A stretch of DNA of 64,000 nt, taken from the NCBI GenBank assembly GCA_010909165.1, contig VJWM01000003.1, forward strand, positions 1-64,000. The letters are read 5' to 3'. Origin of the DNA: Anthoceros angustus. Taxonomy: Eukaryota; Plantae; Anthocerotophyta. The notes under the pieces were generated by a model that searched no databases, was not told where the DNA came from, and saw nothing but the letters and a program-made list of their open reading frames with translations. Below are positions 1,660-37,149 of the stretch, piece by piece (positions within the stretch are counted from its first letter, which is position 1; the number at the start of each line of letters is the position of its first letter). A program made the translations under genes and the position numbers.

Positions 1660-4430
1660 CTTCAAGACAAGGACGCTTGCTTTCCATGAAGGAGCTTACT
1701 TAATGTGGCCATTTTTCACATCAATCGACTCGCAAGGAGCCCATTTACCGCGACGATGTGCCCAAGCAGACAGTGGGGGACATGCATGCCAAGAATTGCC
1801 GGAAGCCGTGCTCATCCGGCCCTTCACACTGGACTATGCCGTACTACCATGCATGCCACCCAAGAAGGATGCAATGGCCTATGGATGAGAAGGAGTGTGG
1901 GGACTACCGTCCCATCAATGCCACCGCCCAGACGCACAACCCAATCCGAGGAGATTTTGACAAAGATTGGCAACTCCACTTTCTTCTCCATACCGACCTT
2001 CGGCAAGGCTTCAACCAGGTCCCTGGCTAAGGAGGACATCAAGAAAACTGCTTTCCATGGTTCCCAGCAGTTGTGGGAATGGCTGGTGATGCCTTCGCTT
2101 CAAGAATGCACCGTCACTTTCTGTCATGGACATAGTGCTTCCGGATCCGCCAATCTAGTGTGCTATATTGATGATGTGCTTGTCCACAGCGTGGACTTTG
2201 AGTCACATTTAGTCCATTTGGAGGACCTATTTCAGCGCTTGAGGAAGGCACGGTGACTTGCCACCGGCTAAGGCGAGTTTGGGAGTGACACAGTGGGCTA
2301 CCTTGGACATTGCATTGTGCCCAATGGAGTGACGCCACACTCTGCCAAGGTTCAGGCCATCCTACAGGTCAAGGAGCCTACCAATGTTTCGGCGCTACGA
2401 GCTTTCTTGGGTCTATGCAACTACTATCGAGTATACATCCAAAACTTCAGCCGAATAGCCAAGCCCCTCAACGACCTGCTGCGCAAGGATGTCAAATGGG
2501 AATGGACAGAGGCGGTTCAGCAAGCCTTCGAATCCTTGAAGGAAAGGCTGACCGAGGCACCCGTCATGGCTAGGCCAGATTTCGAGAAGCCCTTTGTGGT
2601 CCACACCGACTGGAGCATCTTGGGACTTGGAGCTGTGTTGGCCCAGCTAGACGAGGAAGGGCAGGAGCGAGTGATTGCCTATGCCTCTCGCAGCAACAAT
2701 AGAGCTGAAGCGAACTACAGTAGCTACCAAGGAGAGTGTCTTGTAGCCGTGTGGGCCGTTTGCCACTTTCGGCCCTACCTCTATGGCAAGCCCTTTACGC
2801 TGGTCACTGATCATCAGCCTCTCAAGTGGCTCATGACCAACACCAAGCTCAGTGGTAAGCTGGCCAGGTGGGCCATGATTCTTCAAGACTATGAATTCGA
2901 GGTGGTTCACCGGCCGGGCATCAAGCATCAAAACGCTGACACTTCGTCCCGAAATCCTGGAGACAGCAGCGAAGATGCCACGGAGGCAAGGCAAGATGCT
3001 GATTCCAGAATGCCCGGTCTTCTCTTTGCTTATTTATTTGGCTGGCCAACGCCGGATCGAGTCCGAAGGACGTGTGGGAGGATTCTGACACTTTGAAGTT
3101 TTTGCAAACAGGTCAGCTAGACTCCTCCTTGAGATTAGCCGAACAGGAGCGGATCAAGCAGCGTGCCTCCTCATACCAATGGCGGGATGGCTACCTTCTA
3201 CGAAGGCTGCATAATGAGCTGGAGCGCCTAGTTCCACCACCGGCGGACCGGGTGGAGCTGATCCACCGAGTACACAACGACATGGGACACTTTGGTGTCA
3301 AGCGCACCTACAGCCTGTTGGTTCCTCACTTCTATTGGCATGGCATGCATGCTCGTCAAGCAACGGTGGCGTCTTGTGAGGAATGTGACCGTCAAGACCT
3401 CATTCACTATCCAACATGCGCAGCTCCACCCACTCCCGATCATGGGACTATTCTCGTGGTCTGTGACTTGATAGGAGAGCTGCCACGGACGCCAAGAGGG
3501 AATGTTTACATTCTCGTTATGATGGAACATTTCTCCAAGTGGGTTGAGGTAGTGGCGCTACCAGACAAGACTTCACGGAGCACGGCCCAAGCATTCTTGC
3601 AGAACGTCTTGGGTAGATTTGGAAGTTGCGCCGAGTGTCTCACCGACCAAGGCTCCGAATTCCGGGGAGAGTTCCAAGATCTTTTGGATTCAGCCCTCAT
3701 TGATCACCGTCGGACCAGCCGGGATCATCCCCAGGCTGATGGGTTGGCAGAGCGGATGGTTCAGACCATCAAGAAGGGTCTTAGGAAACTCTGATTTGCC
3801 CAAGGCAAGTGGGACTTGTCACTTATATATTGCCATGGGATCTGTATGAGCAAGCATGGCGTTGGCTCATTTCAGCCCTACTTTACTGCTTTGGTAGGGG
3901 CCACGCCCCTAGTTCCATTGCCAAGCACATATGCGAGGTGGTGGACTTGGATGACCCAGTGTGGGGAGTCATTGGACAGGGGCTCTCTTTTGCCAAGCAA
4001 TGCCTATGGCCATGGCCAATTTGGCGCATTGCTCAAGACCGAGACACCCTCCGCTATGCCCACACTCGGTGGCGTTTAAGCTGAAGAAATTTCGGTGGGG
4101 ACTTCATCTACTTGCAGCTGCAAACTGGATACCTTGGACACCAGGCCAAGCATGTGCTACGGGTCAAGGAGGTCGAGACCCAGTGGGTTCTTTTTTTGCA
4201 AGGAGTCGATGGGCGCACAACCACCGACCACATGAAGAATTGTGCGCCCGCCACCTCCCAAATCTTGATCCAACCATTTGTGATTGGATTCCCCAAGATT
4301 ACCCATGCCAAGTATGCCGGTATCGATGATTCGAGACTTGATGTTCTTGTCGATAGCGCAATGGAGGATACCATCTGCTCGCTTGATTCCACCTTTGTCA
4401 AGTCCCAGGTTGTGGTATTGCCCAGTCTTG
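1660..4430 (+). pseudogene. Ty3/gypsy pol of element 1: RT, RNase H, integrase, C-terminal PHD finger (frameshifted)
   Basis: RT: CGDYRPIN, DLRQGFNQ, CYIDDV. RNase H: FVVHTDWS...IAYASRS...TDHQPLKWL. Integrase: HH-CC zinc finger (HNDMGHFG...CEEC) and DDE residues (CDLIG, LTDQGSEF, GLAERM). The order RT-RH-INT is gypsy. Confidence 0.95.
4306..4430 (+). other. PHD finger coding segment after the integrase (element 1)
   Basis: Corrected reading CQVC...MFL(C)DS(C)NGGYHLL(C)LIPPLSSPRLWYCPV, a C4HC3 pattern with the conserved W before the last Cys pair. Several 1-nt indels are needed. Confidence 0.8.
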
Positions 4431-4483
4431 GCGGGCAACCTGCGTTCGAGCACTTACCATCAAGACCCAAACAGCTGGGGGAG

Positions 4484-4752
4484 GGGACAAGAGAACTATG
4501 TTTTCGATGCGGGGTTGGCACAATTGGAAGTCCATGGCGAGAAGGGAACTTCAGCATTGCCAATGTGGTGAAAGAGGAGGAGGATACCGGGGCGGTCCAA
4601 GACGCCATACTGGGGCGATCGATGCTCGGCCATACTGGACAGCCAGTGTCGCCATACTGGGGCGGTCGATGCTCAGCTCCTGGGGCGGTCAGATCAGCCA
4701 TACCGGGACAGCCCCAAGAATGCTGACCCCTAGGCACCTTGACCCTCGACGT
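4484..4752 (+). repeat. Dispersed repeat with a degenerate minisatellite, homologous to ~15955-16280 and ~17510-17830
   Basis: Shared gacaagagaactatgttt...ggttggcacaattgg...aatgtggtgaaagag...ccaagacgccatact...ccctaggcaccttgacc. Confidence 0.85.
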
Positions 4753-5849
4753 CGTGAAAACAATAACAGAGATAGCGGATGTGCGGTGACTAGAGATGGG
4801 TGGGGGGCTCGATCCCTCCCGGGGCTCTCCGATCTGTTCCGGGACTCACTCAGCCCAACGTCCGGGACACTCTCATCCAGAACTTGAGGCTGTCTTAGGA
4901 CCTACTACTTACTTACCTTAGCCTTATTTTCCTTTTGTTGAGATAGGCTAGAACACCATAATATTTGAACCGGCGGAATATACATCAAGCGGCTTTATGC
5001 ATGAATATACGCTGAACCGGGTTGTGGATGGTAACTAAATCGATGTTCATGTATGTAGTTGCGGATAATGTGTTCAAAATTATGGTCAAAATCACATTCT
5101 ACTTCAAATTTACAAGGAGCCCAGCACAAAGGGTCGTGGGGACATTCTGTGGTTTGCAATGATTTAGCACCGACTTCACACTTTGTGCTGATCCGAAACC
5201 CGCCGATGTTGTTTACAATATATTGTCTTATATCAAGGGAATGGAAGCCACTTTTGCATCCGGGTTCACATTTACGGTGGCAAGGTATGGAAAATGTGCG
5301 GTTCCTCTATGGTAGAAAGGTGAGTAACCGCAGTCGCGGGCGGCGCCGCATGCCGGCGCCCATCGCATGCACACCTTGCAAAGGCCCTTAGCCATTCCTC
5401 GTGCACCAAACAGTTCAACATGGCCTTTTGATATTGTGAGCGGAGAAATCTCTTGTAGTGTACCATGTTCTTGTGAACCCTCAACAAAACCACAATTTGG
5501 CATATCCTCGAAAGGGCTGCCAAGTTTCACGGAAACATTGGGTTGGCGCCACCATTAAACGAATCCACTAATCAACAGAGCCATGGCAGCCCTGACAATG
5601 GAAGGGGCCACTAGGAATAGACGCACAAAATGTGGTGCGGAAGGAGTGCGGCATGCCATCGCAAAGGGTGTTACAAAGGGTTGCGCCATAAGTTCTTAGG
5701 AGCGGACCATGATGGAATATATTTCAAGCCGTTTTATTCACTCCTCACCGACTCGAGACCGTGCCCTCCATGCCCAAGACTGCGTCATCCCCATCATCCT
5801 CGCTGTCCACCGATGAGGGAGTGGTTGAAGATGGGGACGGAGGGCACTT

Positions 5850-8800
5850 AACTTCTTTGATAGCTTTTTATCCGCCGCGTACAGATGTTTCCTAGAAGTG
5901 AGATTGAACCCATAGTACACAATGACCGCCTTATGGACAAACAACTTCAATGTTGGGAGGCTTCCATGCTTTTGCACCTTTGTTGGTAGGAGGTAGTTCT
6001 CTGTCCTCCGGTCCTAACAAAGTATTCCCGACATACTTGCCCTCGTATGCATCTGTGTGTTTTCGCCACTGCACTGTGAAGTAGGGGTCATCGGCGGTCA
6101 TGTGCACACTCAAGACCTTTGCAACCTGTAATTCATGGAGTGTCCCCTCACAAGGTGACAATAAACATACCTTTTTATCTCCATGATGTCACCATTCATC
6201 CGCTCGACCTCTTGTTCCCGTCTTTCCACACTGTAAGCTCAAGTACATGTCCGTGGAGGCACGCCTCGCAATAAGGCTTCGTCCAATATAGCCTCCTCCG
6301 AACTCAGTGGTACAAGTGCATCTGCCGCAGATCCGCTATACCACTTCCACCGCCTTTTCGCATAAAGGCCGATGTTATTGTCCACAATAGTTGCGATCTC
6401 CTCTTGATCCTCCAAGTCACTCCACCACTCCTCACCCGTTAGATATGTTGAGCTTTTGCAAACCCTTTCTTAAGTGGTCTACTCCATCCGTGCACAAGGC
6501 TTCCATCAACGCCTTTCTTGTCCTTGGCCCAGAGCTAGCAGGTTGTAGGTCCAATCTCGATTTGGAATAAAAGACAAGAACTCCAGCCCATCTTCTTCCC
6601 ATAACGGTGAGGTCGAATAATCGCTTCAATAACGTTACTTTACCCCGCTGACTTTTCCTCCCGCGTGATTTTGAATTGGTGTTGGTATGATAGATTGTTT
6701 AGCTTGCGAACCGCACTTTAAACTTCCGTGCGCCTTCCCTGCTTCAAAGGCCGACGAAAGAACGGAAGTCCGGAACCTCGGTCGACCTTCACTGGTTTGG
6801 CGTGAAAGCCTTGCTCAATATATCCCGCATGACGGAAGAGTTTTGCCTCTTTGTGCTTCAATGTTTGGAAAACACGAGAACATTTGGTCCACTGGTCATG
6901 TGTGTGACCTACAAGAAGAAAGCCCACCTTCACTTTTTCAAAGTCCCCGCTCCACGAGCATATTCGGATAAGCAAAATAGTTGATTCTTGTTCTCCGACA
7001 TGTGTTGTCCAGTTGCAAATATAGAACCTTGGGAAGTAAGCCAACATATGTATGTATCACATCTTGGATAATGCATATGGTTAAATTAGCATCATTCCGC
7101 AAATTTGTGAGTGCGATACCGACTTGAACGTGTGATTGTGGATCATACACCCCACCACATGGACGAATACATAGTCTTCTTTAGCTCCTTAGGCCATCTA
7201 AGTATATGCGGTAAGGATGTTTTTTCGATCCATGCCATCGATACATAACAACATGTACTTGTGAGGCTCGGTGTATCCTTTCGCTCGATGTTTTGTCAAC
7301 TTCTTCCTCCTCCATAAGCTTTATGCGATGTTTGTTCAACGCGTCCCGATATATATCGCCTTCAACCAAACATCATGTCGGTCCATCCATGAAATATAAC
7401 GTCATGCGCTAACCAGACCAACCAACGGAGTTCGACATAACCCGTAGGGGCAAAGGGCAATAGCATGATGGCAACCCTCGGAAGGGTCATGCCCCAACAG
7501 CAACCTAGGGATCCACCCCAGGCGGCCCAGATCGGTCCTTAAATCCCATCTGCAGGGCGCCCCCGCCGCCTCCCTACCGCCTCAATTAGGATGTGGCATG
7601 CCGCGCCCCAAGCTCCTTTAGGGTTTAGGTCGCGCCGCCTCCCCCATTGCACACCCCCATGAGGCGCGGCATGCCGCCTCCTCCCTCCCACAACACATGA
7701 GGGCGCCGGCATGCCGCGCCCCCGCCGCCTCCTCAATGAGGGGCATGGCATGCGGCGCCTTCCCTACCTCCTTTAGGGTTTAGGTCCCGCATGCGCCGCC
7801 TCCTCCCCTCCGCACACCCTCCACATGAGGGCGCCGGCATGCCGCGCCTCCTCCTCTCCTCCCACGACCCCGAGGGCGCCGGCATGCCGCGCCTCCCCAC
7901 TGGCGGCGCCCGCCACCGCCTTCATCTCAGGGCCGAACCGTTGTGCCTCGACCAAGGTTCAACCTCCACCATCACAACGCCCACCGTTAGATATCGATGG
8001 CACTGCCACTTCTAACCTTTCACCGCTTTATACCATGCCGAAAAACGGTGTGAGCGATGAGCTTACCTTGATCCGTCTGCGATCCAAGATTTCAATGTTG
8101 AACTTTAGACCGCGCAAAGAGAACATGTTGAAAACCGATTGATTTGGGTATCTTCACGCTTGAAGTTCGCTCCCATAGTCTCGTAAAGTAAGCATACGAA
8201 ATATCTGCAGCCCTTTTGCTCCATGCCACATTTGTATTGTGTCCACACTTCTAGTTTGGTGAAAGTGTCGAAGATTGTAGACTTCAACATTAGGCGCCGC
8301 CAATTGCGTAAATGTTGCATCCATCCATGCAATAGCGCCCAATGCATGAGAGGATTTCACCCGGGCTTGGCTTGCTACAATCCCATGGTGAATTCAACAA
8401 GACCGCCTTCACCTCCTGACCTTTCCGACCCTATGCAATACACCCTTCAAGGATTTCGTGCAACACTTGATTGGAACCGGCCTTGAAAGTACATACTTTG
8501 TCTTTGCCATTCGAACCATGGTCGTCTTACAAGGGTCTCTAGGAATGTCTCCGCCGACCTTCCCAACCTAAGGAACCTTTGCCTCTTCTGAAACCTTCCT
8601 CGAAAGTCGTTGAATACATACTTTGTTGCAACACGGTTTACGGAAATCCTCCGTAATCTGTCCGCCGCCTTCTTCAAGGAGACACCACGCGTGTTTGCAA
8701 ACGAAACGCAAGCTCGTCATAGCCGCAATGTCTCCGACATTGGCTTCGGATGATATGTACACTGCAGCGAGGAGGTGAACGGGAGGGTGGGGAACGTTGT

Positions 8801-8900
8801 CGCCGCCAAGAATATCGCTCCCCGATGCACCCAAAACTCCACACGGAGGCGAAAGAGACCTCTCATTGCCCGCTGATGGCTCACTCGAGGGCGGCATCTC
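5850..8900 (-). pseudogene. Sola-like (Sola1-type) DDD transposase, frameshifted, probably intron-containing
   Basis: Minus-strand motifs in order: CCNKVC (N-terminal Cys cluster); FTKLEVW.QYK; FTRLW..NF..VKIPK.NRFSTCSLC; EPHKYMLLCIDGMDRKKTSLPH (~7235, first D); LPKVLYLQLDNTCR (~7010, second D); FEKVKVGFLLVGHTHDQ.DQMFSR (~6890, third D). The superfamily label is recalled from motif patterns, not searched. Confidence 0.75.
7540..7930. repeat. GC-rich array of GGCGCCGGCATGCCGCGCC palindrome-like motifs with TTTAGGG teloboxes, probably in a transposase intron
   Basis: At least six gcatgc-centred motifs. ttagggtttagg occurs at ~7618 and ~7773, giving a ~155-bp higher-order period. A minus-strand donor (aggtaag) lies at ~8067. 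Confidence 0.8.
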
Positions 8901-11219
8901 CTCCTGTCTTCGGGGCTAAGTTCCATAGCCGCATACAAGTTCAAGTTCCGAGGCGTCGGTGGCACATAGGGGGATGCACGCGAAAGGTGATGAGTCCTTC
9001 GGCACCCTGAGCCTGCAAGCATGTTTGCCGAATACAAGGTGAAGCTCATCGTCATCCAGCCAGACAGGCGATGATTACCAGTGCAAACCCGCATGCCCCA
9101 GGAGGCATTGCTCGGAAAACATCCGAATACCGCACGAATTATGAAACATGAGCTTTTCAACAAAGAGCACTTAATGTGGTCGCCTCATCGCCGGCAAAGT
9201 TTGCAAGCGCTTACGGAAATAGATCGGATGCTCCTTTCGTCGCATGCGCGCTTGAGTGCAAGACATTACAGATGCGGACAAGTTCCTCCCATCTCGCACT
9301 CGATCGATGCATGACACCCACGGTCGAACAACGACCCAATGGATATAAACTACATTGAAGGAGCAGGCAATCGCTTTGAAGCTACCTCTGTATCCTCATC
9401 GGTATGGGTGGAGTGGAGCATGGTGTGTGACGTTCACGTCTCGCGGAACGCAAACGAGCCAGCCGTCAACCAGGAGCAACAAACAAGGAGGTGGGCAAAT
9501 TAGTATGAGACATCGGAGAACAAGCAGCCGGATGCCTTAGCGTCGAATATTTCCAGCATTCACTGTTGGAGAAGATCTACCTATCAAGTGCCGGATCCGA
9601 CGCCGCCGTCATTTACTAGCGCACATAAATGTTGCGGCTTTTGCCATTTGGTATCGGGAATCATTTAATGCAGTACGTAACACCACGCTGGAAAACATGG
9701 GCACCCGCTTAACGAAACCATGGCAAAGCAAGCGGTGCCGAATTAGGGTTCCAAAAATGGACACCAAAACGCGGTGGCGATTACCGTCGCGGCTTTTAAC
9801 CGCCCCGACCTTTTAGGGCTTCAACCTTACCGTAATGGAGCGCCCATCACGGCCTACACCGTGTTCACGGCCGAGTTGCGCCCACTTCCGCAAGCCGTGA
9901 ACGCCGGATTGCGCCGCCCACGCCGCTTGTTCGTGATTTTTGTCAATTGCGCCGCCTGCCTGCGTGACTTCGCGGCAGTGCGCGCATCCCGCCTCCTTTT
10001 GCATTGAGGGAGAACTGGGTAGTCACCGTAATCAGCTGCACATGCGAGCTATGGCAAGTGGGCGGCGAAGAAGGAATTGGCGATCGAAGAAGAAACCCCG
10101 CCGCATGTAGACAAACCAAAACGTCAAGAGACCAAAAGGGAAGAAGGAGACCCACGCAAAGGAGCCGTGCGTGAGTGGATGCACACCAAAGTTCGAGCCG
10201 ACCGGTGTTCCAATTCAGGAGCATTCAAAAGGTAACGAGCTGCCCTGACGGGGCCCCGAACTCTCGTGGATCCCGGGTCGGCAAAGGTGAGCACAACGAA
10301 GGGAGCGGTGAGGGAAATCGAGATGGCCAAGTCACAAAAGCCACCGGATTCTAATCCTCACCTTTACGCTTGAGGAGACTGCTCAATTGCGCAGACACAC
10401 TAACCGATTGATGAGACAATTCTCCGGAGAAGGACCGCTTGTGACATGAGCGCAGAGTCAAGAAGACAATGTGGTGTGGACACCCATGCTGAAATTGTGG
10501 ATTTATGGCCACAATGTGCGAATCAGAGCAGGTGGGTATGTGGTCCGGCAACTTTGATAGAAGCGGAAGGAGATCCGGATATTCAGCTGCTGGTGACTTC
10601 AAAGCCTTATGGGTTTGAAGCTTTGCCAGTGGGGTCGGAAGATTACAGTGTGTTCGTGTTGAGCATAGCAGGCTTGCACAGCAAAAAGTGCGAGCCACGG
10701 GAACTGTCTCTTAAATTCCGGGAAGCTCTTCGACCGAGGATTGTAAGTGTGTGTCTTTGGAAGTCATTGATTTTGAAGTTTTGGAACATCATTGCATCCA
10801 CTTAACACTTTTCGGCACTTCTAACGCTTGGGCGTAATGCAAGGAATTTTTATCGATGCTTATGTGAGGTGATTACAAGTTCTATCATCAATCACCGCCG
10901 GAGATGTCTTTAGAAGGACCTGGGCTATCGACTATGAATTGGAAGGAGATGAGGACGAGGCGAGTATGGACCCTCGGTGAAGAGGATGGCCCTATACCGG
11001 AGCTGCACGCATGATGACGAAATGTCGGAGGAGGACGGTGATAACCTTGAGGAGTAATGGAATTTGCTTCCATAATGCCGGGCATCCATGCTGGTGCCCA
11101 CTATTCCTTCCAATCCAGATGAGGACATGGGTCGCAAAGGAATTACTGCGGGCAGGAGCACATGGAGTTGGGTACCCCCGCATCGGGTTTATATCAGGGT
11201 ATGAAGGCATGGGAGGAGA

Positions 11220-11640
11220 GGAAGGGCGCCGGCGTGCCGGCGCCCTTCCTGGCACAACCGCCGCAGGAAGGCGGCATCCAAGTACTATGGGATCTGTGCA
11301 GGAGGGCACCCAAGGGTTAGCCAGACCATCGGCCGGAACTAGCCGCCGCCGTGGAGGAGGAGGCGCCGGCATGCCGCGCCCCGGCCTTGGGACGAGAGGG
11401 AGGCGCTGCATGCCGCCCGGTGGCCTTGGGACGAGGAGGGCGCGCATGCCGGCGCCCGCCGGCCTTGGGACGAGGAGGGCGCTGCATGCCGCGCCTCGGC
11501 CTTGGGAGAGGAGGGCGCCGCATGCCGCCTCCGGGAGACGAGGGCGCGCCGGCGCGCCTCCCGGCCTTGGGAGAGGAGGGCGCGCCGGCATGCGCCCGCC
11601 AGCCTGGAGGGAGGGCGCATGCCGCGCCCGTGATGCCGGC
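11220..11640. repeat. Second GC-rich array of the GCATGC-centred palindromic motif, interleaved with ggccttgggacgaggaggg units
   Basis: ggcgccggcgtgccggcgcc at ~11225, ggcgccggcatgccgcgcc at ~11363, and many variants to ~11630. Confidence 0.85.
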
Positions 11641-11899
11641 GATAGTGGAGGCGTATCGGGAGGTAGTGGGAAGCGCAAACGGAGTTCGACATATGCAGCT
11701 GGTTTGGGGGGCAGGTCAACAAATGTGGAGCCCGAAAGAGATTTGAGAAGGAAGAAAGGCAAGCGCGCAGCAGGAGCGGCAGACAAGACATCCCGACTAT
11801 GCATGTCGCGACTGACGGGGAGAGGCTGGAGGCCTCCATTCAGGATGAAGATTATTTGCGGAATATCGAGAGATACGCCAAGAAAGTGGTTCAAAGCAG

Positions 11900-12878
11900 T
11901 TCTTGAAATTAGAGAATTTAAGGCCCCATCCTTTCTTTCTCCGATGCATTCGGATTGTGGATGAAGCTTGGACCAACCACCGCTCGAGTCATTTCGAAAG
12001 GTAGAGTGGAGGAAGGTGTCTTGCCTCTACTATGCATGATTGACCCAGGAGTGCAGACATTCAATCTATAGATCGATAAGTTTAGAGCCAAGAAGTATGT
12101 CATGGGAGTGCTCGGGCAATCACACCTATGCACGATGAAGCATCCGCGACATATCTCCATCAAGGCCGATACCAATGGATGGAAGCCCATGTGTATTGTG
12201 GGCTCACTTTACCGAGATGAGGGTTCCGCCACCACCACAACACTATGTCCGATAAACGGCGGAAGATGAATTTCATTGAGCAAGTAAGGTACTTGCGAGA
12301 TGAGTTGCAGATTGCAAAGAGAGTTGGTGTCAATATGAGCATGAACTGGAAGTTCAACTGTATAAGGTGCTAGGCTTGATAGATGATGATGAGGCCGAGA
12401 GGATGAGCGATAAGCAAAACAAGGTCGATAATCGCACACATATCCTTTGCATCGCCAAACTTGAAGGGAGAGTGTGGGAAAATGTTGATAAGATCTTCAC
12501 GAAGTGGAGGCCATGGAGTTGCGAACAAGCCAAACATGTTGTCAGGAACAAGCAAGAAAAGCAAGGGAAACTAAGATCGCAGATGAGGCGAAGTCGGACC
12601 AAAGTTTTGTGAAGCCAAAAGACATGCAAGGAAGCCTTGGCGAAGTTTTCGGTATTCCACCGGGTGAGACTGCCAAAAATGTTGATCGTGTCACCGAGAA
12701 GGTCGTGTGTCTCATAGACCTCAATGGTATGGCCAAAGAGATCACTTCGGAAGAAACTACATGTGATCCAAGTGGCTATGGCGAAGCATCTAGGCTGCAA
12801 TTCATTCGAGATGGTGAGGAAGGAGTACCTGCACTCAACGGATGAAGTCATTGCCGCTGATTTCATTTTCAAGGGAAG
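11900..12878 (+). pseudogene. ParB/Srx-like domain coding region in the transposon cargo gene
   Basis: Corrected reading RIVDEAWTNHRSSHFE...IDPGVQTF...KYV.GVLG(G)NHTYA...EAHVYCGLT...HHHNTMSDKRRKMNFIEQVRYLR. The R..D and G(G)NH pattern resembles ParB-like folds. A GTGAGT donor follows at 12879 and a tttgcAG acceptor at 13004. Confidence 0.5.
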
Positions 12879-13199
12879 GTGAGTTTTGCTGTTCTTACCA
12901 GTATAGAACTATAAGAGGGCGCCAGCATGCCGGCGCCCTCCCTTTCCCTATTGTCCCCGCAATCTGACTTTCGGCAATCTCACTTGTTTTGTGTTATTTT
13001 GCAGCAAGTTAAAGATGTTGAAGACCTGAAAAAGCTACCAGAAGATTTCCACGCTTTTATATTAGAGGTCCACACATGGAAAGGGCTGGAGGATGAGCAG
13101 AGGTCACTTGCGGACATGGACATGGAGGAAGGGCTGCAATCATCGTGCCCAAAACAGAGGAGTTAGTGAAGTATCAAGTGGTGCGCAGAGATGTGGCGT

Positions 13200-13800
13200 A
13201 AATGAGAGGGTTTCTTTGAGTCAAGTATACAACGGTGATGGATGTCCCTGTGGGATTCAACAAGGGAAGTATGATGTCAAACTTGAGCAAGAAATGGCAA
13301 ACATATTTCATTCCTTCCATGACATGACAATGTGCGACGAGATCGTAATGATAGTAATGCATGGTGTGGAAGAGCGCATATTGTCGTGAGAGTATGAGGA
13401 AGTGGTGTGCGTGGAGGCATGGTCTCATTTGTTTGGGACAAAACTAATATGCACAATGACCAAGGAGGCTTTGACACCGTGGAGTACATCATGGGGTGGG
13501 GTGTGACCGCACGAGCAAGAAGACAAAGGTGTCCATGTCAATACCTTGCGTGGCTCTTTCAATAATGGGCGGCGGTTATTGCACACGACGTGGTGAAGAA
13601 GTTATTATACATGTCACCGGACAAGCTGGTTGTTTCCGCGTATCGAGGCCACCGGGTCTAATGATGAAGTTGATCAAGAACTTCCGAGAAGGAGATTGGA
13701 TATTAGATGCATGTGGAGTGGAACAACGACATTAGCGGCACTCCTTTGTGGCCGAAATTGCATTGCCGTGGAGGTTGACAAACGCTGCGTAGTTCATTCC
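13200..13800 (+). pseudogene. Beta-class N6-adenine/N4-cytosine DNA methyltransferase (N6_N4_Mtase-like), copy 1
   Basis: Catalytic-position motif VMDVP(C)GIQQGKYD at 13241; FVWDKTN...VEYI; C-terminal RPPGLMMKLIKNF.REGDWILDAC.GSGTTTLAALLCGRNCIAVEVDKRC (motifs X-I-II). Catalytic motif before the SAM-binding motif is the beta permutation. Confidence 0.85.
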
Positions 13801-14149
13801 GCAAAGGATTCATGGCTATGAAGTTTTACGGACGCAGAGGAGGAGTTGACCCATGAGCCACACCGCCGAGGCCCCACCCACCTGGGCAAAAGAATTGAGC
13901 TTGTCCGAGAAGGATGCATCCCAGCCCGTAGTCCCACTTGGGTTGAGCAGATGAAAGAGAAGACCGAAAAAGCTACCAAGATTTCCGTGCTTTTATATTA
14001 GAGGTCCACACATGGAAAGGGCTGGAGGATGAGCAGAGGGCACTTGCGGACATGGACATGGAGGAAGGGCTGCAATCTTTACCGTGCCCAAAACAGAGGA
14101 GTTAGTGAAGTATCAAGTGGTGCGCAGATGTGGCGTAAATGAGAGGGTT

Positions 14150-14770
14150 TCTTTGAGTCAAGTATACAACGGTGATGGATGTCCCTGTGGGATTCAACAA
14201 GGGAAGTATGATGTCAAACTTGAGCGCAAATGGCAAACATATTTCATTCCTTCCATGACATGACAATGTGCGACGAGATCGTAATGATAGTAATGCATGG
14301 TGTGGAAGAGCATATTGTCGGGAGAGTATGAGGAAGTGGTGTGGAGGCATGGTCTCATTTGTTTGGGACAAAACTAATATGCACAATGACCAAGGAGGCT
14401 TTGACACCGTGGAGTACATCATCGTGGGTGTGACCGCACGAGCAAGAAGACAAAGGTGTCCATGCTGCCAAACACCTTGCAGGGCTCTTTCAATAATGGG
14501 TGAGCAGTTATTGCGCACGATGCTGTGGTAAAGAATTTATTACACATCCTTGGACAAACTGGTTGTTTCCGCGTATCAGAGGCCACTGGGTCTAATGATG
14601 AAGTTGATCAAGAACTTCTCCAAGGAAAGAGATTGGATATTAGATGCATGTGCAGGGAGTAGAACAACGACATTAGCGGCACTGCTTTGTGGCCGGAATT
14701 GCATTGCTGTGGAGGTGGACAAGCGCTGTGTAGAGTTCATTCCTCAAAGGATTCATGGCTATGAAGTTTT
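14150..14770 (+). pseudogene. Beta-class N6A/N4C DNA methyltransferase, copy 2 (tandem duplicate)
   Basis: DVP(C)G at 14178; SFVWDKTNMHNDQGGFDTVEYIIVG; ORF 14550-14876 YQRPLGLMMKLIKNFSKERDWILDACAGSRTTTLAALLCGRNCIAVEVDKRCVEFIPQRI. Confidence 0.88.
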
Positions 14771-15074
14771 ACCGGACGCAGAGGAGGAATTGACCCATGA
14801 GCCACACCGCCGAGGCCCCACCCAATTCTGGGCAAAAGAATTGAGCTTGTCCGAGAAGGATGCATCCCAGGCCTAGGTAGTCCCACTTGGGTTGAGCAGG
14901 ATGATCGCCAGCAAACCCTGTCTGCATTGTGGCATCCTGACTATTTGGAGAAGAGCAAGGAGGATGCGAACGATATCGCCGGAAATGCTATGGTCGAAAA
15001 CGACAATTTCGAGGATCCCGAGGATGCTCGACACGAAGGACGGAAGTTGTGTTAGATAGCGTGTCGGGACAATG

Positions 15075-18000
15075 CCCTCCGAGCCACGCCTCAAGCCGAG
15101 AATCGGTGAGGAAGTGAGTCTAGTTTAGTTTTGAAAGTTCCATAACCTCAATGGTTAGAATTAGATGGCGCCGCATGCCGCCTGCTTCCTTCTTTAACTA
15201 TGAGTGACATTGTTATTCGCTTTGTCAAGGATGACTTCGCTGACGGCCGCAAAATATCCGTAGACCTCGCTTTCACACCTATAAGACATCGGCACCGCAC
15301 GAGGTCCGAATGCACCAACATACCCACATTCGTGTGAAAGCACCACAAACGGGATGCGCAACCTCAAGCACTAAACTTGCATCACGATCGGATGGGGAAC
15401 CCGAATTTGGTCCCGGTTTTCAAAGCGGGTTCGTATATTCACGGTTCAAATATTATGGTGTTCTAGGGTAGTTGCTTAAAGGGTATATATATATTTGACC
15501 AACCAAACTAACACATTCACATTAGTTTTTAGGTGTGTTTAGTTAGGTTGGTTTCATTAACAACACCTAGGAGTTGACTTAGGTTAACCGTAGGTGTACC
15601 CTAGAACCGCCGGTGAAGGACGCCCATGATGACTCACACCAACAAGGGCCGAGGGAATCATGGGAAAGCAAGGACCAATTGCCAAGTGGATCCGAGCGTG
15701 AAGATTGAGATGGACGCCGGACAAAAGGAGGAGGGCGCCCATTGAAGGCGTTGTTGAAGTCGTGCCAGAGCGCCAGAAGGAGAAAGAAGCATTGCAATTT
15801 CTAATTTTGGTGTGTGGAATGTGTTGATGTTTTCCTTGGGATCGAACTTGGGAGGGCGATCCGCAGGTGGGCTGATTTCACCGCCAATTTCACAATCGTG
15901 TGAGGCCCCGCTATCAATGCCAGCGATGCCGTCAACAAGAAGCGCGATTTTTTTTGACAAGAGAACTATGTTTACAAGTGGGTTGGCACAATTGGCGCCC
16001 ATGAAGGGGAACTTCAAAGATTGCTAATGTGGTGAAAGAGGAGGAGATACTACGCCCCAAGACGCCATACTCGGATGGGCCCCAAGATCACCATACAACC
16101 CCAAGACGCCCATACCGGATAGTCCCAAGATCGCCCATACTGGACAAGCCCCAAGACGCCCATACTCGACACCCCAAGATCGCCATACCGGATACCCCAA
16201 GATACCATACCGGATACCCCAAGATCACCATACCGGATACCCCAAGATCGCCCATACCCTAGGCACCTTGACCTCAAGACGACAAGACTTTTGGCTGCTA
16301 TTTGTATCCAAGTGTGAGGATCGGCTTGTCCGGTCCGACGACGCCCACTTGGTAGGTAGGTATCCCGTGGGTCGATTTCATGCCTCACCTAAACTCTAAG
16401 AGTGCCTTGGACAGCTTCTTAAAGCACAAAGAGTCATTCATGGTACGCCCACAACGCCTCCTCACCGCCGCAGATAGAAGATCGTACTCCACTTGGTGAT
16501 CTTTTGCTCGCAGTTTTTGAGTAGAGTGTGGCTAACATCTTCATGCACACCATGCCAGTCATGTTCTTTTATGGAGGCATCTTAGTTCATTGCCAATCGA
16601 TCGGTTTGATTGAAGCGCAATGCCTCCCGAGCCACGCCTCAAGCCGAGAATCCCCTCAAGAGGGAAGTGAGTCTAGTTTAGTTTTGAAAGTTCCATAACA
16701 ATGGTTAGAATTAAGATGCGCCGCATGCCGCCTGCTGTTTCCTTCTTTAACTATGAGTGACATTGTTATTCGCTTTGTCAAGGATGACTTCGCTGACGGC
16801 TGCAAAATATCCGTAGACCTCGCTTCACACCTATAAGACATCTGCCGTGCACCGAGAGGTCCAGAATGCACCAACATACCCACATTCGTGAAAGCACCAC
16901 AAACGGGATGCGCAAACCTCAAGCACTAAACTTGCATCAATGGATCCGGATGGGGAACCCAATTTGGTCCCGGGTTTTCAGCGGGTTCGTATATTCCGCC
17001 GGTTCAAATATTATGGTGTTCTAGGGTAGTTGCTTAAAGGGTATATATATATTTGACCAACCAAACTAACACATTCACATTAGTTTTTAGGTGTGTTTAG
17101 TTAGGTTGGTTTCATTAACAACACCTAGGAGTTGACTTAGGTTAACCGTAGGTACCCTAGAACCGGGTGAAGGACGCCCATGATGACTCACACCAAGCCG
17201 AGGCCGAGGGAATCATGGGAAAGCAAGGACCAATTGCCAAGTGGATCCGAGCGTGAAGATTGAGATGGACCGGACAAAAGGAGGAGGCGCCCATTGAAGG
17301 CGTTGTTGAAGTCGTGCCTCGAGAGCGTAAGGAGAAAGAAGCATTGCAATTTCTAATTTTGGTGTGTGGAATGTGTGATGTTTTCCTTGGGATCGAACTT
17401 GGGAGGGCGATCCGCAGGCGTGGGCGCGATTTCGACCGCCACCTCACAATCGTGTGAGGCCCCGCATATCCAACCAGCCGATGCCGGCTCAACAGCGCGA
17501 TTTTTTTTTGACAAGAGAACTATGTTTTCGATGCGGGGTTGGCACAATTGGCGGTCCATGGCGAGAAGGGGAACTTCAAAGATTGCTAATGTGGTGAAAG
17601 AGAGGAGGATACTGGGGCCCCAAGACGCCATACTGGATAGTCCCAAGATCACCATACGGACAACCCCAAGATACCATACCGGATAGTCCCAAGATCGCCA
17701 TACTGGGGCCCCAGATCTTACTCTGACACCCCAAGACGCCCATACCGGATACCCCAAGATCGCCGGGATGGGCCCCAAGATCACCATACTGACCCTGAAG
17801 TATGCCCCTAGGCACCTTGACCTCGACGACGACATTTGGCTGCTATTTGTATCCAAGTGTGAGGATCGGCTTGTCCGAGGTCTGACGACGTCCACTTGGT
17901 AGGTAGGTATCCTGTGGGTCGATTTCATGCCTCACCTAAACTCTAAGAGTGCCTTGGACAGCTTCTTAAAGCACAAAGAGTCATTCATGGTACGTCCACA

Positions 18001-18180
18001 ACTGCCCCTCCTCACCTGCTGCAGATAGAAGATCGTTACCTCCACTTGGTGATCTTTTTGCTTCTGCAGGTTTTTGAGTAGAGTGTGGCTAACATCTTCA
18101 TGCACACCATGCCAGGTCATGTTCTTTACAGGAGGCATCTTAGTTCATTGCCAATCTGTACAGTTTGATTGAAGCGCAGC
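15075..18180 (+). repeat. Tandem duplication, ~1.55-kb unit, including the right TIR and flanking DNA
   Basis: tgcc(c)tcc(c)gagccacgcctcaagccgagaatc at ~15074 and ~16621; TIR at ~15433 and 16989; gtcgatttcatgcctcacctaaactct at ~16371 and ~17918. Confidence 0.9.
16055..16260 (+). repeat. Minisatellite, ~22-23-bp unit CCCCAAGATCGCCATACCGGATA (about 9 copies); paralogue at ~17615-17810
   Basis: Head-to-tail units read directly; no unique spacers. Confidence 0.9.
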
Positions 18181-18633
18181 TGCCCTTTCACATCGCGTTG
18201 GATCATCACAATACTGGTGCTTCCGAGCCCTTGTATGAGACCTATCATGGCGCCTACATAAACATCCAGGTCAAGACCACAATGTGGATGCTGCAGAGAG
18301 TTGAAGTGTGATTTTAGCAGCTGCTTCGCTAACAAATTTGCAACTCAGCACACTCGGTTCGGTTCTTGTTCCAAAGGCATGATCACCCCGGCGTGCTAAG
18401 GGATATTTCAAGGCTCCTTCTACAAGTAGTAGTTCATGATAGAGGGAGAGGTCACTTGCTGATTGGTGTTTTCCTCCAAATGAGTTGCGTCATTCCCGAC
18501 GACTTCCGTGTCTAAATCAGGTGGTAAAGAAGCACCAAGTCCCTACATACCTCCATGGAATTTCGAATTGAGTGACCTTTAAGCTCAAGTGGCAGCATTC
18601 TGACAAGGAAGTCGAGGTCAGTTGTTTCTTTTA

Positions 18634-18866
18634 TTTGGCCTGAGGTGTTGAGGCGAGATTATTATACTATCACTTCTCGCCCTGTGCTTATGTTCATACT
18701 ATTGAGAAGCGGTTTGATCACTTTGGATATGGCGGAGTCCTTGATGATTTGGCCTGAGGTGTTGAGGCGAGATTGTTATACTATCACTTCTCGCCCTGTG
18801 GATATGTTGATACTATTGAGGAGCGGTTTGATCTCTTTGGATATGGCGGAGTCCTTGATGACTTGG
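18634..18866 (+). repeat. Two tandem ~115-bp repeats
   Basis: ttggcctgaggtgttgaggcgagatt.ttatactatcacttctcgccctgtg...ggatatggcggagtccttgatga occurs twice. Confidence 0.9.
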
Positions 18867-18999
18867 CCGCAGATAAACCGTGGAATTGACTCGAGCATCC
18901 CCTCGTATCATCCCATTTTTTAGTAAAGTATTTTATCGAGTAATTATTGTTTTATTACCCAAATGGGGAATAATAGAAACGGGAGTGGAACGTAAATAC

Positions 19000-19135
19000 G
19001 AACGCGGACGGAACGGCGAACGGAACGGTGGACGAGAATGACGGACGGAACGGCGGACGGAACGGCGGACGAGAACGGCGGACGGAACGGCGGACGGAAT
19101 GTTGGGCGACAATGATGAACGGGAGTGGACGGGAC
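19000..19135 (+). repeat. Simple repeat (GACGGAACGGCG)n-like
   Basis: Repeated ggacggaacggc units. Confidence 0.85.
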
Positions 19136-19748
19136 GTCAATGGTAACGTGAACGGAAAGAAAGAACGAGAACGGGTTGGGGGTATGGGTTAAACATGAGT
19201 TAGGAAAACAACGGTTCCTAAATAACACAAACAAGCTCTTCGTTGTTTTCAGCTAGGTTCGGTGGCCGTTGTTTTTCCAACTTTTCCGTTGTTTTTTACA
19301 AACATGCGTTGTTTTCACACGTTGTTTTGGATCCTCAAATGTAGTAGTGGCAGAGGATTTTGTTCTCTGACTCTGATGAAGATGAGGCGTTTGGCATGAT
19401 GGCGGTGCGCAAGAAAAAGAAAAGGACTGTTGTTGACTTTGGTGAAGGCGTCACTGCGAAGGGGTGTCTTGGAGCAGGAATCGACCAAGATGCCGAGAGT
19501 TTCCGTCGGTCGAGAAAACTCCACGACACAGGTGTCAAGACCGATCGAGACGTTGAGGCGTTCTTTGGACAAGGCCATGGAGGTGCCTCGCAGAAGTCTT
19601 GTGGATCCGGGAGTGAAGGGCAACAACTTCAAAAACATCATGCGAGAATGGGTGAGAAAGGAGCTTGAATCCGCAGGATCTCTTCCTAGTATGGCGGTTG
19701 TGTGGCGAGCATCGATGCCGGAGGAGGCGAGGTGAAGGAGGTGTTGCC

Positions 19749-20045
19749 ATGATTGACAACACGGGGTGACGTGACCTTTGATGGCTATGCTCCGATGCGT
19801 ACTTGTAGACACGGAGCGGATCCGATCGGGAGCACGAGTGCGGGAGGCACTAAAGTCAGACGGACACAAGCTCGTTCGGCGTGAACATCACCACCTCTGC
19901 GGTACCAAGGCAGTCGGGAATGATGAGGAGGCCCGTGAAGATTGAATTGAAGCTCGCACGAAGGATGCGGCATCATTGAAGTGAGATGTTTGGTCACTGC
20001 AAAGACATATGATGTCTTGCTGGGTCGGATGGAACTCACCGTCAC
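19749..20045 (+). pseudogene. Retroviral-type aspartic protease remnant (element 2)
   Basis: atgattgacaacacggggtgacgtg reads as an MID(N)TG-like active-site segment, and AKTYDVLLGRM occurs ~250 bp downstream. Confidence 0.55.
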
Positions 20046-20459
20046 GCCATGGGGTTGATCCCTTGCACTCAAGCTTTCTGAGACCATTACGGTGGAGAGG
20101 AGATTTCACGCATGTTGCAATTCCTCTAAGGATGAATAGGAGTGGTGGCAAGAGCAGGACGAGGATGACGGGCAGCGCCATGATTGCCCGAGTGCTCAGA
20201 GTGAGCATCGACATGAGATGTGGGAGGAAACGCAGAGTTATCCTCTCCGGAGATGCCAAGCCAAGAGAGCGAAGGGTGTGCTTAAGGTTGTGCGCCGTAA
20301 TATTTGGATCAAGCGAGGGTTCGAGAAAACCAAGGAAGGAAGGAGGATCGACGGAATCTCACGGACACATGTCCCGAGAGGTCGATCCGGTATGAGGCCC
20401 GCCAAGTCGGAGATCGACGCATCGGCGATGCTCTAGTACGATGGAAGGTGGGCGTCAAG

Positions 20460-21325
20460 GCATCCATGTTGGAGCTACCTCGGGGTCGGCGGGACAGGCG
20501 GTGTTGCGGTGTGGCGTCAAGATACGGCAATATACTGCGTGGAAAAGGATGAGAAGATTCGAGCCGCTAGGGTCGAATCCTCGTGTTCAGCGTATCCAAC
20601 ACTCGAGCGAGGAAGCGCTCGAGGTCGAGCGGTGCCTGACGTGAACTGGTTGGGAAGCGGCAGCTAGAAGCCTTGTCAAGCCCGGTGGATATGCTGATCG
20701 CGGGATGGGAATGCAAGACATTTTCGACAGCAGGCAGAGGCAAAGGTGAAGGCGTTTCGTTGGCCGCTGAGCTCGCACGAATCACGCGAGAAGTCCAGAT
20801 TGCGAATCCACGATGTTGGTACATTCTGGAGAATGTGTGTGCAGCCATGGACAAACGTCCAGCTGTTAGGGCCCTGTATGAAGAGATTCGGGCGTGGTTC
20901 GGCAATGAGTTGATCATGGACGCGGTGCAGTGTGGCTCATATGCACACAGGCTTCGCAGTTACTGGACAAATGTGGCTGGACTGGAGGTGCTCAGACAGC
21001 ACAGGAATTTAACGACTCCGAAGCGGAAGGTCGTGGATGACATCCTAGAGTTGGGAAGGTGCTCACAACAGGTGAAGCGGATGGACAAGTTGCCATTTTA
21101 CCACATGAATCGAGTAGGGGAAGCCGAAGGGCATGGCCAACTCGTGAGCACACCGCAATCTTATGCCTTCGCACGGAGGAGATGGTGTGATTCTCGATTT
21201 GAAGGGAATGAGCTTGGAGCTCAATGTTGAGGAACGCGAGCAAGCGATGGGCTTTGCCAAGAAGGACACTCGGACCATGGGCATCACGATCTGCAAGATG
21301 CGGATGCTTGGATGCATTTGACACA
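20460..21325 (+). pseudogene. C5 cytosine DNA methyltransferase domain inside the retrotransposon pol
   Basis: Motif I LEL(Y).GVGG (~20470); motif II VEKD; motif IV VDMLIAGWECKTFSTAG (Cys at 20712-20714); motif VI YILENV; motif VIII AHRLRSYWTN; motifs IX-X LELNVEEREQAMGF...RMLG (21214-21320). All are in canonical order. Confidence 0.9.
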
Positions 21326-21499
21326 TGTCGAGGTGGTGTAAACAGCTTGGCGTTCCAACTTGCGTGTCAAGGAAGCGAAAGCCTTCCTCCAACTACTGCA
21401 GGATAAAGAGGTTCCTAAGGCAGAGGAAGATGAGCTGCTGCGGGAGAGATTCAGCATGGCCGCTGTGGATACTGAACTGTCTACCAAGAGTGTGACGAA

Positions 21500-35500: not shown

Positions 35501-36772
35501 TTTGTGCTTCCCCTGAAGGCAGTCCGGGAGTCGAGCTTGTGGAAGGAATTATCAGGACAGAGTGTGTCGAAAACCTCACACTCTGTATCTACCGCCATAA
35601 CCAGTCAGTGCTAACGCAGGATTTGCTCAAGTGTGTTTTGCAGACCAACAAGACTGTACAGGGAGATTTTCTCCTCAATGGATCTGGCCGACTTCAAATG
35701 GTCGTGGCCAGAATGTCCTGAAGCCTCTTTGAGAGTGCCTTTGAGGGAGCTGATGAGCTCTTAAGTACTGGTGAAGTCTTGGATGTCTTGCAAAGGCGAC
35801 GAACAGGTCTCCGTCAAACCATATCCAGCATAGATGCAGCTGTAGAGGAAGTCCTGCCTACAGAGGAAGGGTGCTCGCACAACAAGACGCACCACTTCAA
35901 ACGTCTCGGTTTGCCATCCGACGTACTATATCCCTCCCTGGAACTAGTCACTCGGAGATGGGGGAGCAACTGTTGCAAACCTTCATGGGATGAGAGATTT
36001 GAAGCACGACGTGAAAATCGTGGATACACGGTTGAAAATGGTGGAGACAGAGGTGAAAGCAGTGGAGTCAAAGTGGATAGAGTTGGCGAGACTTTGCAAC
36101 GTGAGATAAGCGATATGAAGACCTGGCAGGAAGATACTCTACAACTCTTGCTTTCGAAGATGGATGAGATTATGAATTTCTCTGTAGAATTAGAAACCAG
36201 TCAGATACCCAGACGTCCCTACATCACCACTGCAGACGTGGGTCTGGCACAGAGATTGATTGCAGGGGTGCGTGTGGGCAAAGCGGCTAAGCTGCACTTC
36301 ATGTGCGAAAACATCTTTGGGAATCACATCGTGCTGGGCCAAACTGGATTTGACTTGACATTGGAGGATGCGAAGTGGAGGTGGATCAGGCCCTTAGCAA
36401 TCAACGGTGCAAAGCTTTTGCTCTTCCTGGCCAAGGCTGGCCTACACGTGGCTGCCGGCATTGGGGTGCGGTTCCCGACCCTGCTACCAGCTTGGATGGA
36501 GCGGTTTCTGTGGCTGCGGCCTTTGGGAATCAGCCCTGTCCCATTTAAATCTGGACCTGACAGGACCAGCTGCGAGCCAGAACACTCCCGTGCAAGAGGC
36601 ATGGATTGCTCTGAAGAATCTGTTGCAGCCGTTGCTGAGGGATCAAATGGCCGACAAATTCCAACTGCACAAGGTGCAATATCGGAAACGGCAGGATGGA
36701 GGACGAGGAGTGGCATGGGTTTGCGAACGGTGTATGCGGAGTGGAATTAAGAGACAAGTCTATCAGCCGCTC
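32574..36772 (+). pseudogene. TORNADO1-like LRR-ROC-COR (ROCO) gene, copy A, 5'-truncated and frameshifted
   Basis: RI-like LRRs (LESLDLGKNSVGDAEGAQHLARIL); P-loop RLFLCG..LAGKTTL; TEGIEI; TMWDLAGQ; VVATHVD; WVPEVCNRL; TRN1-like C-terminus LHFMCE...DKFQLHKVQY...VAWVCERC. Confidence 0.88.
32595..32870 (+). repeat. Tandem repeats (~117-bp unit twice, built of ~23-bp subunits) at the 5' end of ROCO copy A
   Basis: gggcctggctgcttttgaaggttttgaaagtcaggcggcttttcaagcttttggaaggcagtcggc...gcaggtggcttgtgaaggtttt occurs twice, derived from the gene's own gaaggttttggaaggcaggcggc motif. Confidence 0.9.
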
Positions 36773-36789
36773 TGACGGGAGCAACTAAA

Positions 36790-37130
36790 ACGTCATGTGT
36801 TGCAGCCTAACTGCGGCATTTGCAGGATTTGGAGAGGACACAGGGGACGTCGGTGATCGTGTTGATATTTTGATGAGGTCTGGTAAGGGTAATCGAGTAA
36901 GACCAAACAGTCGAGTTTCTCCTGAGAGCGTTGCAGAACTGAGAGCGCATTGTGCTTCTTCTGAAGGTGGTGCGGAAGTTGAACTTATCGAAGGGATCAT
37001 CAGGATTGAGTGTGTAGAGAACCTCACACCCAGTATCAATCAGTTCTAACACAGTTTGATGAAGTGCCTTCTTGAGAATCAGAAAAGCTTTCCAGGGTGA
37101 AACTCTGGACAGTGTCATCGGAGTGACACC
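36790..37130 (+). pseudogene. COR-region fragment of another TRN1-like paralogue; also at ~38060-38285 and ~49570-49850
   Basis: GFGEDTGDVGDRVDILMRS...HCASSEGGAEVELIEGIIRIECVENL, paralogous to 35390-35580. Confidence 0.75.
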
Positions 37131-37149
37131 TGAAAAAGAGACACTGTCA

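Follow-up and report, generated by a model that had tools for sequence, protein, structure and literature searches.

Where DNA methylation and transposons meet, the transposon is usually the target. Can a transposon carry a DNA methyltransferase of its own and aim it at itself? An element of this kind would, if true, reverse the usual relation in a plant lineage. The question is raised by a locus of the hornwort Anthoceros angustus at the beginning of contig VJWM01000003.1 (assembly GCA_010909165.1). The window analysed here is the whole stretch of 64,000 nucleotides from position 1 to position 64,000 of the forward strand, to which coordinates refer unless another locus is named. A first-pass annotation, made from the letters alone, had described a DNA transposon with a methyltransferase and a ParB-like region as cargo. 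Our analysis revealed that the element family is real and conserved, and that the copy in the window is a poor specimen of it. The element is a cut-and-paste DNA transposon, and its cargo is a spliced gene in which a putative ParB-like DNA-binding domain is fused to a beta-class (permuted) DNA amino-methyltransferase.

Ends of the element and its empty site

The boundaries of the element are given by the target-site duplication, the terminal inverted repeats (TIRs) and a tandem duplication at the right end.

4948-4951, no strand: CTAG, left copy of the target-site duplication (four contigs diverge before 4952; X2 contig)
4952-4983, plus strand: left TIR, 32 bp, starting AACACC (perfect complement of 16989-17020)
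15433-15462, minus strand: first copy of the right TIR, 2 nt shorter than the left TIR; end of the element proper
15070-18178, no strand: two tandem 1.55-kb units, 15070-16619 and 16618-18178, with differences between them rich in insertions and deletions (indels)

Contigs of two public runs were placed on the locus, namely the DNA run X1 and its sister run X2, which is labelled RNA with a question mark. The first-pass annotation had reported perfect TIRs of 36 bp, and the inverted repeat 4948-4983/16989-17024 is indeed perfect across 36 nt. In four X1 contigs from other copies, however, the similarity starts at 4952 and runs inward, with unrelated letters before it. A further contig from X2, 1217 nt long and with a depth of 34, follows the left flank as far as 4951 and runs on for another 30 letters, which found no place in the stretch used for the placement. 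These letters align at 26 of 29 positions just to the right of the element, from 17025 onward and, in the duplicate, from 15467 onward, and these two places are the top-scoring ones for them in the entire window. The X2 contig is thus a paralogous empty site with a single CTAG. Because the empty site has only one CTAG, the outer 4 bp of the 36-bp repeat are the target-site duplication, a palindromic CTAG, and the TIR is 32 bp long.

The right end at 17024, which had been taken as the limit of a single element, belongs to the tandem duplication. Each 1.55-kb unit combines the final 393 bp of the element with about 1.15 kb of flank, and the copying of the element end together with its flank accounts for the third TIR copy at 15433-15462. 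This copy is directly followed by a CTAG at 15463-15466, and the perfect right TIR at 16989-17020 with its CTAG at 17021-17024 sits in the second unit. Therefore, the element proper spans 4952-15462, or 10.5 kb, and entered a CTAG site as a single unit. The TIRs, the 4-bp target-site duplication and the empty site together identify it as a cut-and-paste DNA transposon with the cargo inside, as had been proposed.

Other copies in the same species were also found among the contigs. An X1 form joining 4995 to 6172 is an internally deleted copy, and X1 contigs joining 13026 to 13967 represent other copies with a single methyltransferase unit. The summed contig depth peaks at 240 in the cargo gene and lies at 40-140 in parts of the transposase gene, which fits many copies in Anthoceros angustus, although depth is no copy count.

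A putative ParB-like domain fused to an amino-methyltransferase

The cargo gene lies in the right half of the element and consists of the following parts.

12086-12878, plus strand: exon or exons of the ParB-like N-terminal domain (pieces of profile A1 colinear; tblastx colinear with locus L003)
12879-13004, plus strand: intron between the ParB-like and methyltransferase parts, GTGAGT...TTTTGCAG (splice signals; one palindrome at 12919-12936)
13005-13954, plus strand: methyltransferase segment, tandem copy 1 (repeat unit 13020-13954), spliced to the ParB exon, with at least four frame changes (profile A2 in pieces)
13959-14904, plus strand: methyltransferase segment, tandem copy 2 (PF01555 E=1e-10; profile A2 E=2e-35)

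The methyltransferase is best seen in copy 2, where profile A2 matches colinearly across the whole domain; in copy 1 it matches in pieces. The C-terminal half of copy 2 (14532-14873, followed by a stop at 14874-14876) is the best-kept part. Pfam family PF01555 matches 14550-14876 with 42.4 bits against a cut-off of 26.7, and full-length relatives reach up to 65.7 bits. The motifs stand in permuted order, with DVPVG at 14178-14192 and FVWDKTN preceding YQRP...LDACAGS(R/G)TT (about 14640)...IAVEVD. The beta-type assignment of the first pass is thereby upheld in its motif order and its family, except that motif I of copy 2 reads GSRTT and not GSGTT. The predicted intron carries GT and AG at its ends and a pyrimidine tract ending in CAG; the exons as written are one base out of phase.

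The relatives of the enzyme were searched in an exhaustive protein search with a 114-aa C-terminal piece as query. The best matches share about 50% identity and are all eukaryotic in character. Named members of the family come from Riccia sorocarpa, Adiantum, Ginkgo, Chara braunii and the sea cucumber Holothuria, a taxonomic range that stands for this one exhaustive search and two cluster look-ups; the full-length family alignment as query returned Ginkgo paralogues only. The family consensus reads D-h-P-Y-G, W-x-K-x-N, YQKP, D-x-C-x-GSGT and NC-x-AVE-x-D. An N-terminal domain is common to 14 of the 152 scored proteins, and the window has it too, with colinear matches of profile A1 at hmm positions 51-75, 83-127, 115-188 and 239-270.

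Among solved proteins, the family profile matches CcrM (1e-13) and also DpnA, M.MboIIA and M.RsrI (1e-13 to 1e-10), which are N6-adenine enzymes. A solved cytosine-N4 enzyme was matched at 5e-7, in the S-adenosylmethionine (AdoMet) part only, and the best phage family matches are PHROG 67 and 498. Similar to CcrM, DpnA, M.MboIIA and M.RsrI, the family has the permuted order with the catalytic motif before the AdoMet motif. In contrast to the DPPY of the bacterial and phage beta-class enzymes, it reads D-h-P-Y-G, and its gene has a spliceosomal intron and resides in a eukaryotic transposon. The earlier annotation had also drawn a parallel with N4CMT and DN4MT1. These are eukaryotic PF01555-type enzymes as well, and N4CMT is a host gene with a chromodomain; the family profile matches it weakly, in the AdoMet part alone (5e-7). 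Both carry (T)SPPY, an N4-cytosine signature, with TSPPY in DN4MT1 (bioRxiv 10.1101/2021.02.12.428880), whereas the motif IV of the present family is D-x-P-Y-G, with Asp and not Ser. Judged by these motifs and by the profile matches, the family is separate from N4CMT and DN4MT1 and closer to CcrM, DpnA, MboIIA and RsrI, so the suggested kinship was abandoned. The Asp in motif IV and the N6-adenine specificity of the nearest solved relatives make adenine the likelier target, provided that the enzyme works at all.

The same gene pair and its palindromes in Riccia sorocarpa

The transposase and the palindrome arrays complete the element.

5934-8915, minus strand (outer limits approximate): transposase gene of DUF7869 type, frame-broken (Pfam PF25273, profile A3, tblastn)
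7588-7897, no strand: palindrome arrays with periods of 39 and 45 nt, inside the transposase gene
11210-11600, no strand: palindrome array with a period of about 38 nt and about five units, in the spacer between the divergent genes (inverted relative to the arrays at 7588-7897)

The minus-strand transposase that had been recognized by IDGMD, LQLDN and GHTHDQ was confirmed. These motifs lie at 7320-6721, within a catalytic core at 7320-6509 that family profile A3 matches colinearly over its whole length. Pfam DUF7869 matches the two pieces 7150-6938 (5e-9) and 7047-6718 (5e-5), and tblastn with homologues from Riccia and elsewhere matches 7308-6574. The N-terminal part is placed at about 8915-8100, where the match is weak (8356-8108, E=0.03), and the arrays at 7588-7897 occupy an intron or spacer of the gene. 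DUF7869 is the only Pfam family that the window transposase matches, and it is mentioned nowhere in the open-access literature searched. A Riccia sorocarpa open reading frame (ORF) with IDGMD, LQLDN and GHTHDQID has 113 relatives, dozens of them in Riccia and others in a fern, amphioxus and a clam.

A structure model from 25 transposase relatives has a predicted local distance difference test (pLDDT) score of 87 and a predicted template modelling (pTM) score of 0.86. Its order of strand-strand-strand-helix-strand-helix-strand-helix is the one known from RNase H folds. Acidic residues sit on strands 1 and 4 and where the helix following strand 5 begins. Among the relatives, the LQLDN Asp does not vary and an Asp in GHTHDQID hardly does; the third catalytic residue is a candidate. 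Foldseek gave generic RNase H-fold matches only. A second alignment pass placed the catalytic domains of Mos1 mariner/SETMAR first (Z 8.7-8.8 over 169 residues), followed by retroviral integrases. The transposase is thus predicted to fold compactly in the RNase H manner, with Mos1 as its nearest solved structure. Pfam DUF7869 gains a function, that of a transposase whose elements have AACACC ends and 4-bp duplications.

The same plan was found in the liverwort Riccia sorocarpa. At locus L004, a transposase gene on the minus strand (4215-8109) and a ParB-methyltransferase gene on the plus strand (10001-13195) diverge from a common spacer. They lie in an element at 2883-13813, about 11 kb long, with TAGA on both sides and the termini AACACC/AACATC. 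A seed-based TIR search in L004 found no ends. A scan that tolerated mismatches but demanded a 4-bp duplication located them, with about 0.4 matches expected by chance, and its top match shares the AACACC start with the window. Locus L001 has a layout like that of L004, with a right end starting AACACC and a transposase cut by another insertion, and at L007 both genes adjoin. The transposases of the window and of Riccia are only 26-45% identical, indicating that the association of the two genes is old. As Riccia has the same gene pair, the AACACC ends, the 4-bp duplication and palindrome arrays, the cargo is a feature of the family and not a one-off capture. The first-pass annotation had named copies lacking the methyltransferase as evidence that would speak against it. 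The finding that the pairing, with the same type of transposase, recurs in Riccia and, by depth, in many copies in Anthoceros angustus answers this point.

The window has 13 distinct sites of a GC-rich palindrome with GCATGC at its centre. All of them fall within the element, and the remaining 50 kb have none. Two patterns of the palindrome match the window 9 and 8 times, against 0.2 and 0.02 matches expected by chance. Besides the arrays, single palindromes are found at 5346 near the left end, at 12919 in the intron between the ParB and methyltransferase parts, and at 15171 near the right end. The Riccia elements have palindromes of their own, with 16 copies of CTCATGCG-N-CGCATGAG at L001 and 18 copies of GTATGCGCGCATAC in the L004 element; these too are confined to the elements, against about 0 expected by chance, and the Riccia genes have a palindrome-bearing intron at the corresponding place. 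The placement is similar in the window and Riccia elements, with palindromes close to the ends, in the spacer and within introns. CATG is common to three of the four element-specific palindromes and missing from that of the L004 element (TGTATGCGCGCATACA).

Three further loci gave observations in their own right. Within L004, the stretch 18064-22101 holds a second DUF7869 gene (18597-20255, minus strand) amid its own palindrome, GTCCATGAG-N-CTCATGGAC, in 10 copies; within the part of the locus examined, no ParB-methyltransferase was seen near it. Locus L008 of Chara braunii has three copies of the ParB-methyltransferase gene within 50 kb (10331-12204, 36214-38142 and 44457-46184), partly merged into one gene model of 1825 aa; no DUF7869 transposase was detected there, and these copies may belong to another carrier. 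At L006 of Holothuria leucospilota (12682-17363), the family gene has at least seven exons and reads DMPQD at the catalytic motif. It is an animal outlier in an otherwise plant-lineage family.

Possible roles of the cargo

On balance, and with moderate confidence, we favour a reading in which the cut-and-paste element uses its ParB-like domain to aim a likely N6-adenine methyltransferase at its own palindromes, with the mark serving the element. The transposase would move the element by cut-and-paste. The ParB-like domain would bind the palindromes as a dimer, by analogy with ParB, Noc and KorB on palindromic sites. This binding would bring the methyltransferase to the DNA of the element, a step suggested by the anatomy of the locus. 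The enzyme would most likely make N6-methyladenine (6mA), and the mark might keep promoters active, shield the element from silencing, or tune the binding of the transposase.

Several observations weigh against this reading, and the first of them concern the ParB-like domain. The region that had been called ParB-like is supported by its colinear match to the N-terminal domain of the family and by a weak structural match to ParB, whereas the Pfam ParB family itself (ParBc, PF02195) matched neither the window pieces nor ten family members. Pfam gave one weak match, to DUF6551 (E=0.006), and the profile of the domain gave a chance match only against PDB sequences. With a model of the Riccia domain (mean pLDDT 67, the first 100 residues of low confidence), the top 19 Foldseek matches are all ParB, Noc, Spo0J or KorB proteins, the best with E 7e-3 and a probability of 0.99, at template modelling (TM) scores of 0.25-0.38. 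VIA-align returned the same proteins as its top 13 (Z 4.6-5.6), mostly over residues 103-241, the helical DNA-binding part. The likeness to ParB is consistent but weak, and it comes mostly from this helical part of the model. In addition, the arginine-rich CTP-binding box of ParB, GERRxRA, is absent from alignment A1 as read by eye; the corresponding place in the alignment has GG-x-H-x-x-x-A, as in GGNHSALA and GGGHSREA. The palindromes, for their part, might just as well be subterminal repeats to which the transposase binds, or parts of promoters.

The catalytic motif is a second point of this kind. The canonical motif IV, (D/N/S)PP(Y/F/W), is absent from all high-scoring family members. The motif reads DVPVG in the window, with Val at the aromatic position, DLPRG in the nearest relatives and D-[VILFAM]-P-[YHRQ]-G among relatives. 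Since the window copy and its nearest relatives are without an aromatic residue here, the family may include inactive enzymes. When three indels supported by reads were introduced around motif IV, the result was no better motif than the window's own frame; these indels probably come from different copies. Furthermore, no RNA run is listed as containing the cargo gene, and no DUF7869 transposase was found within 10 kb of the ParB-methyltransferase gene at the Chara and Holothuria loci examined, so this gene lives in other contexts too.

The state of the window copy is a third. Both genes shift frame repeatedly, and the longest ORF in the whole window is at most 482 aa. We rejected the view that the frame changes prove the copy dead, as about half of the differences between tandem copies are indels. 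Between the two 1.55-kb units there are 55 substitutions and 80 gap openings, and between the tandem methyltransferase units 30-35 substitutions and 27 gap runs. As this share of indels far exceeds that of natural divergence, much of the frame damage is probably noise of the long-read assembly. Read-backed 1-base differences lie at frame changes both in the methyltransferase (13288, 13410 and 13571, from X1 contigs) and in the transposase core (6942, 6948 and 6980). The 1.55-kb duplication may be real but blurred by such noise, or it may be an assembly artefact. The window copy is either defective or badly assembled, and it carries two private tandem duplications. With the many small indel errors that the assembly seems to contain, calls that depend on reading frames should be treated with caution throughout this genome.

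A different explanation, which we regard as unlikely, is that the methyltransferase domain is a pseudo-enzyme or passenger. The ParB-like protein would then be kept for binding DNA, by bridging or pairing the arrays or recruiting host factors, and no mark would be made. The departure of motif IV from the canonical form in every member, with Val, Arg, His or Gln for the aromatic residue in several including the window copy, is what such a protein might show, and neither RNA runs nor methylation evidence were found for the gene. However, in a comparison of liverwort, fern, Ginkgo, Chara and sea cucumber the AdoMet part (YQKP...D.C.GSGT...NC.AVE.D) is conserved better than any other part of the protein, which is hard to explain without cofactor binding, and most members keep Asp-x-Pro-Tyr-Gly.

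Alternatively, the enzyme might be active and act as a timing switch, with hemimethylation after replication controlling the binding or expression of the transposase, like Dam for IS10 and Tn5. Regulation of IS10 by adenine methylation is established (cited in PMC3627910). A hemimethylation switch needs symmetric sites, and palindromes lie near both ends of the element (5346 and 15171) and in the presumed promoter spacer (11210-11600). We consider this explanation improbable. The palindromes are putative methylation targets and putative transposase sites, and one of the four is without the shared CATG. An accidental pairing, be it a host or horizontally acquired gene beside a transposon, a single capture or an assembly chimera, might be suspected from the noisy, indel-rich assembly with its short ORFs and two tandem duplications and from the Chara and Holothuria genes without a nearby transposase, but it is largely refuted and very improbable, as the empty site reveals insertion of the complete unit, cargo included, at a single CTAG, Riccia has the same gene pair inside AACACC ends and a 4-bp duplication at 26-45% protein identity to the window, and the contig depth over the cargo is high in Anthoceros angustus.

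A wider proposal, which we put forward only tentatively and with considerable doubt, concerns the family as a whole. Sola-like transposons of streptophytes might be self-addressed writers of adenine methylation, in which palindrome and reader co-evolve element by element, and might be vehicles of beta-class amino-methyltransferases among eukaryotes, including an echinoderm. The hosts covered by this proposal are a charophyte-grade alga or non-seed plant, a liverwort, and probably a fern and Ginkgo. Each element would have a parS-like palindrome read by a matching ParB-type domain, so that methylation would be confined to that element alone. The system lends itself to tests, as it offers palindromes of 14-18 bp, an intact gene pair in Riccia and a defined element of 11 kb. 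It opens the questions of 6mA and N4-methylcytosine in streptophyte nuclear DNA outside sperm, of self-marking by a mobile element, and of how bacterial amino-methyltransferases enter and move among eukaryotes.

The term 'Sola-like' denotes a resemblance by the 4-bp duplication and the putative compact acidic triad. Sola transposases were reportedly described by Bao et al. in 2009 as having a DDD triad. The present elements share with Sola the 4-bp duplication, TIRs of tens of bp, a putative all-Asp-like triad and the lack of a Pfam transposase family. According to PMC3627910 and PMC4455052, Sola has a 4-bp target-site duplication, and that of Sola2 is AT-rich, AWWT (PMC3627910), whereas the duplications are CTAG in the window and TAGA at Riccia L004. 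The open-access papers examined do not mention a methyltransferase as cargo of Sola elements.

The closest precedent is found in red algae. Plavaka elements, and also Zisupton and Mutator, of Bostrychia moritziana and Chondrus crispus carry a PAG cassette, in which the Plavaka PAG2 is a putative N6-adenine methylase with a SET domain and PAG3 is a ParB-like domain with a 2-oxoglutarate (2OG) oxygenase, as separate genes; tandem inverted-repeat arrays stand beside the ParB gene, and self-binding has been proposed (bioRxiv 10.1101/2025.02.11.637652). Similar to Plavaka, the present element is a large cut-and-paste DNA transposon with a ParB-domain gene and inverted-repeat arrays, the domains being compared by description. 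However, Plavaka is of CACTA type and lives in red algae, whereas the window element has a DUF7869 transposase, 4-bp duplications and streptophyte hosts. In the window and Riccia family the ParB-like domain is fused directly to a PF01555 methyltransferase, and in Plavaka to a 2OG oxygenase; Pfam found neither a SET nor a 2OG domain in the family members.

Other eukaryotic mobile elements that keep a bacterial-type DNA methyltransferase, proposed to shape their own chromatin, are the DAM-TEs, retrotransposons with prokaryotic-type adenine methyltransferases (bioRxiv 10.64898/2026.05.21.726589), and the Gypsy/DIRS DNMT elements. In contrast to the present family, these are retrotransposons with the enzyme within a polyprotein, of Dam-like or C5 class, and without a ParB-like domain or palindrome arrays. 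Viral mariner elements with methyltransferases are also known (PMC3627910). In a survey of eukaryotic adenine methyltransferases, the only fusions of ParB type mentioned belong to a Dam-like clade from chlorophytes and chytrids (PMC4738411). The first-pass annotation knew of no description of such a combination, and we found none in open-access text for this fusion, transposase type or set of hosts; transposons with ParB and N6-methylase accessory genes were already known from the red-algal Plavaka.

The flanks of the window copy are themselves repetitive. A 128-nt stretch to the left of the element (4486-4613) recurs on the right at 15956-16071 and 17510-17636. Together with the empty-site contig in X2, this recurrence indicates that the element sits in a dispersed repeat, which may be transcribed. 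In addition, the flank contains a 23-nt minisatellite of about seven units, with a consensus near CCCCAAGAT-N-CCATACCGGATA, at 16054-16258 and 17618-17764, one in each duplicated unit.

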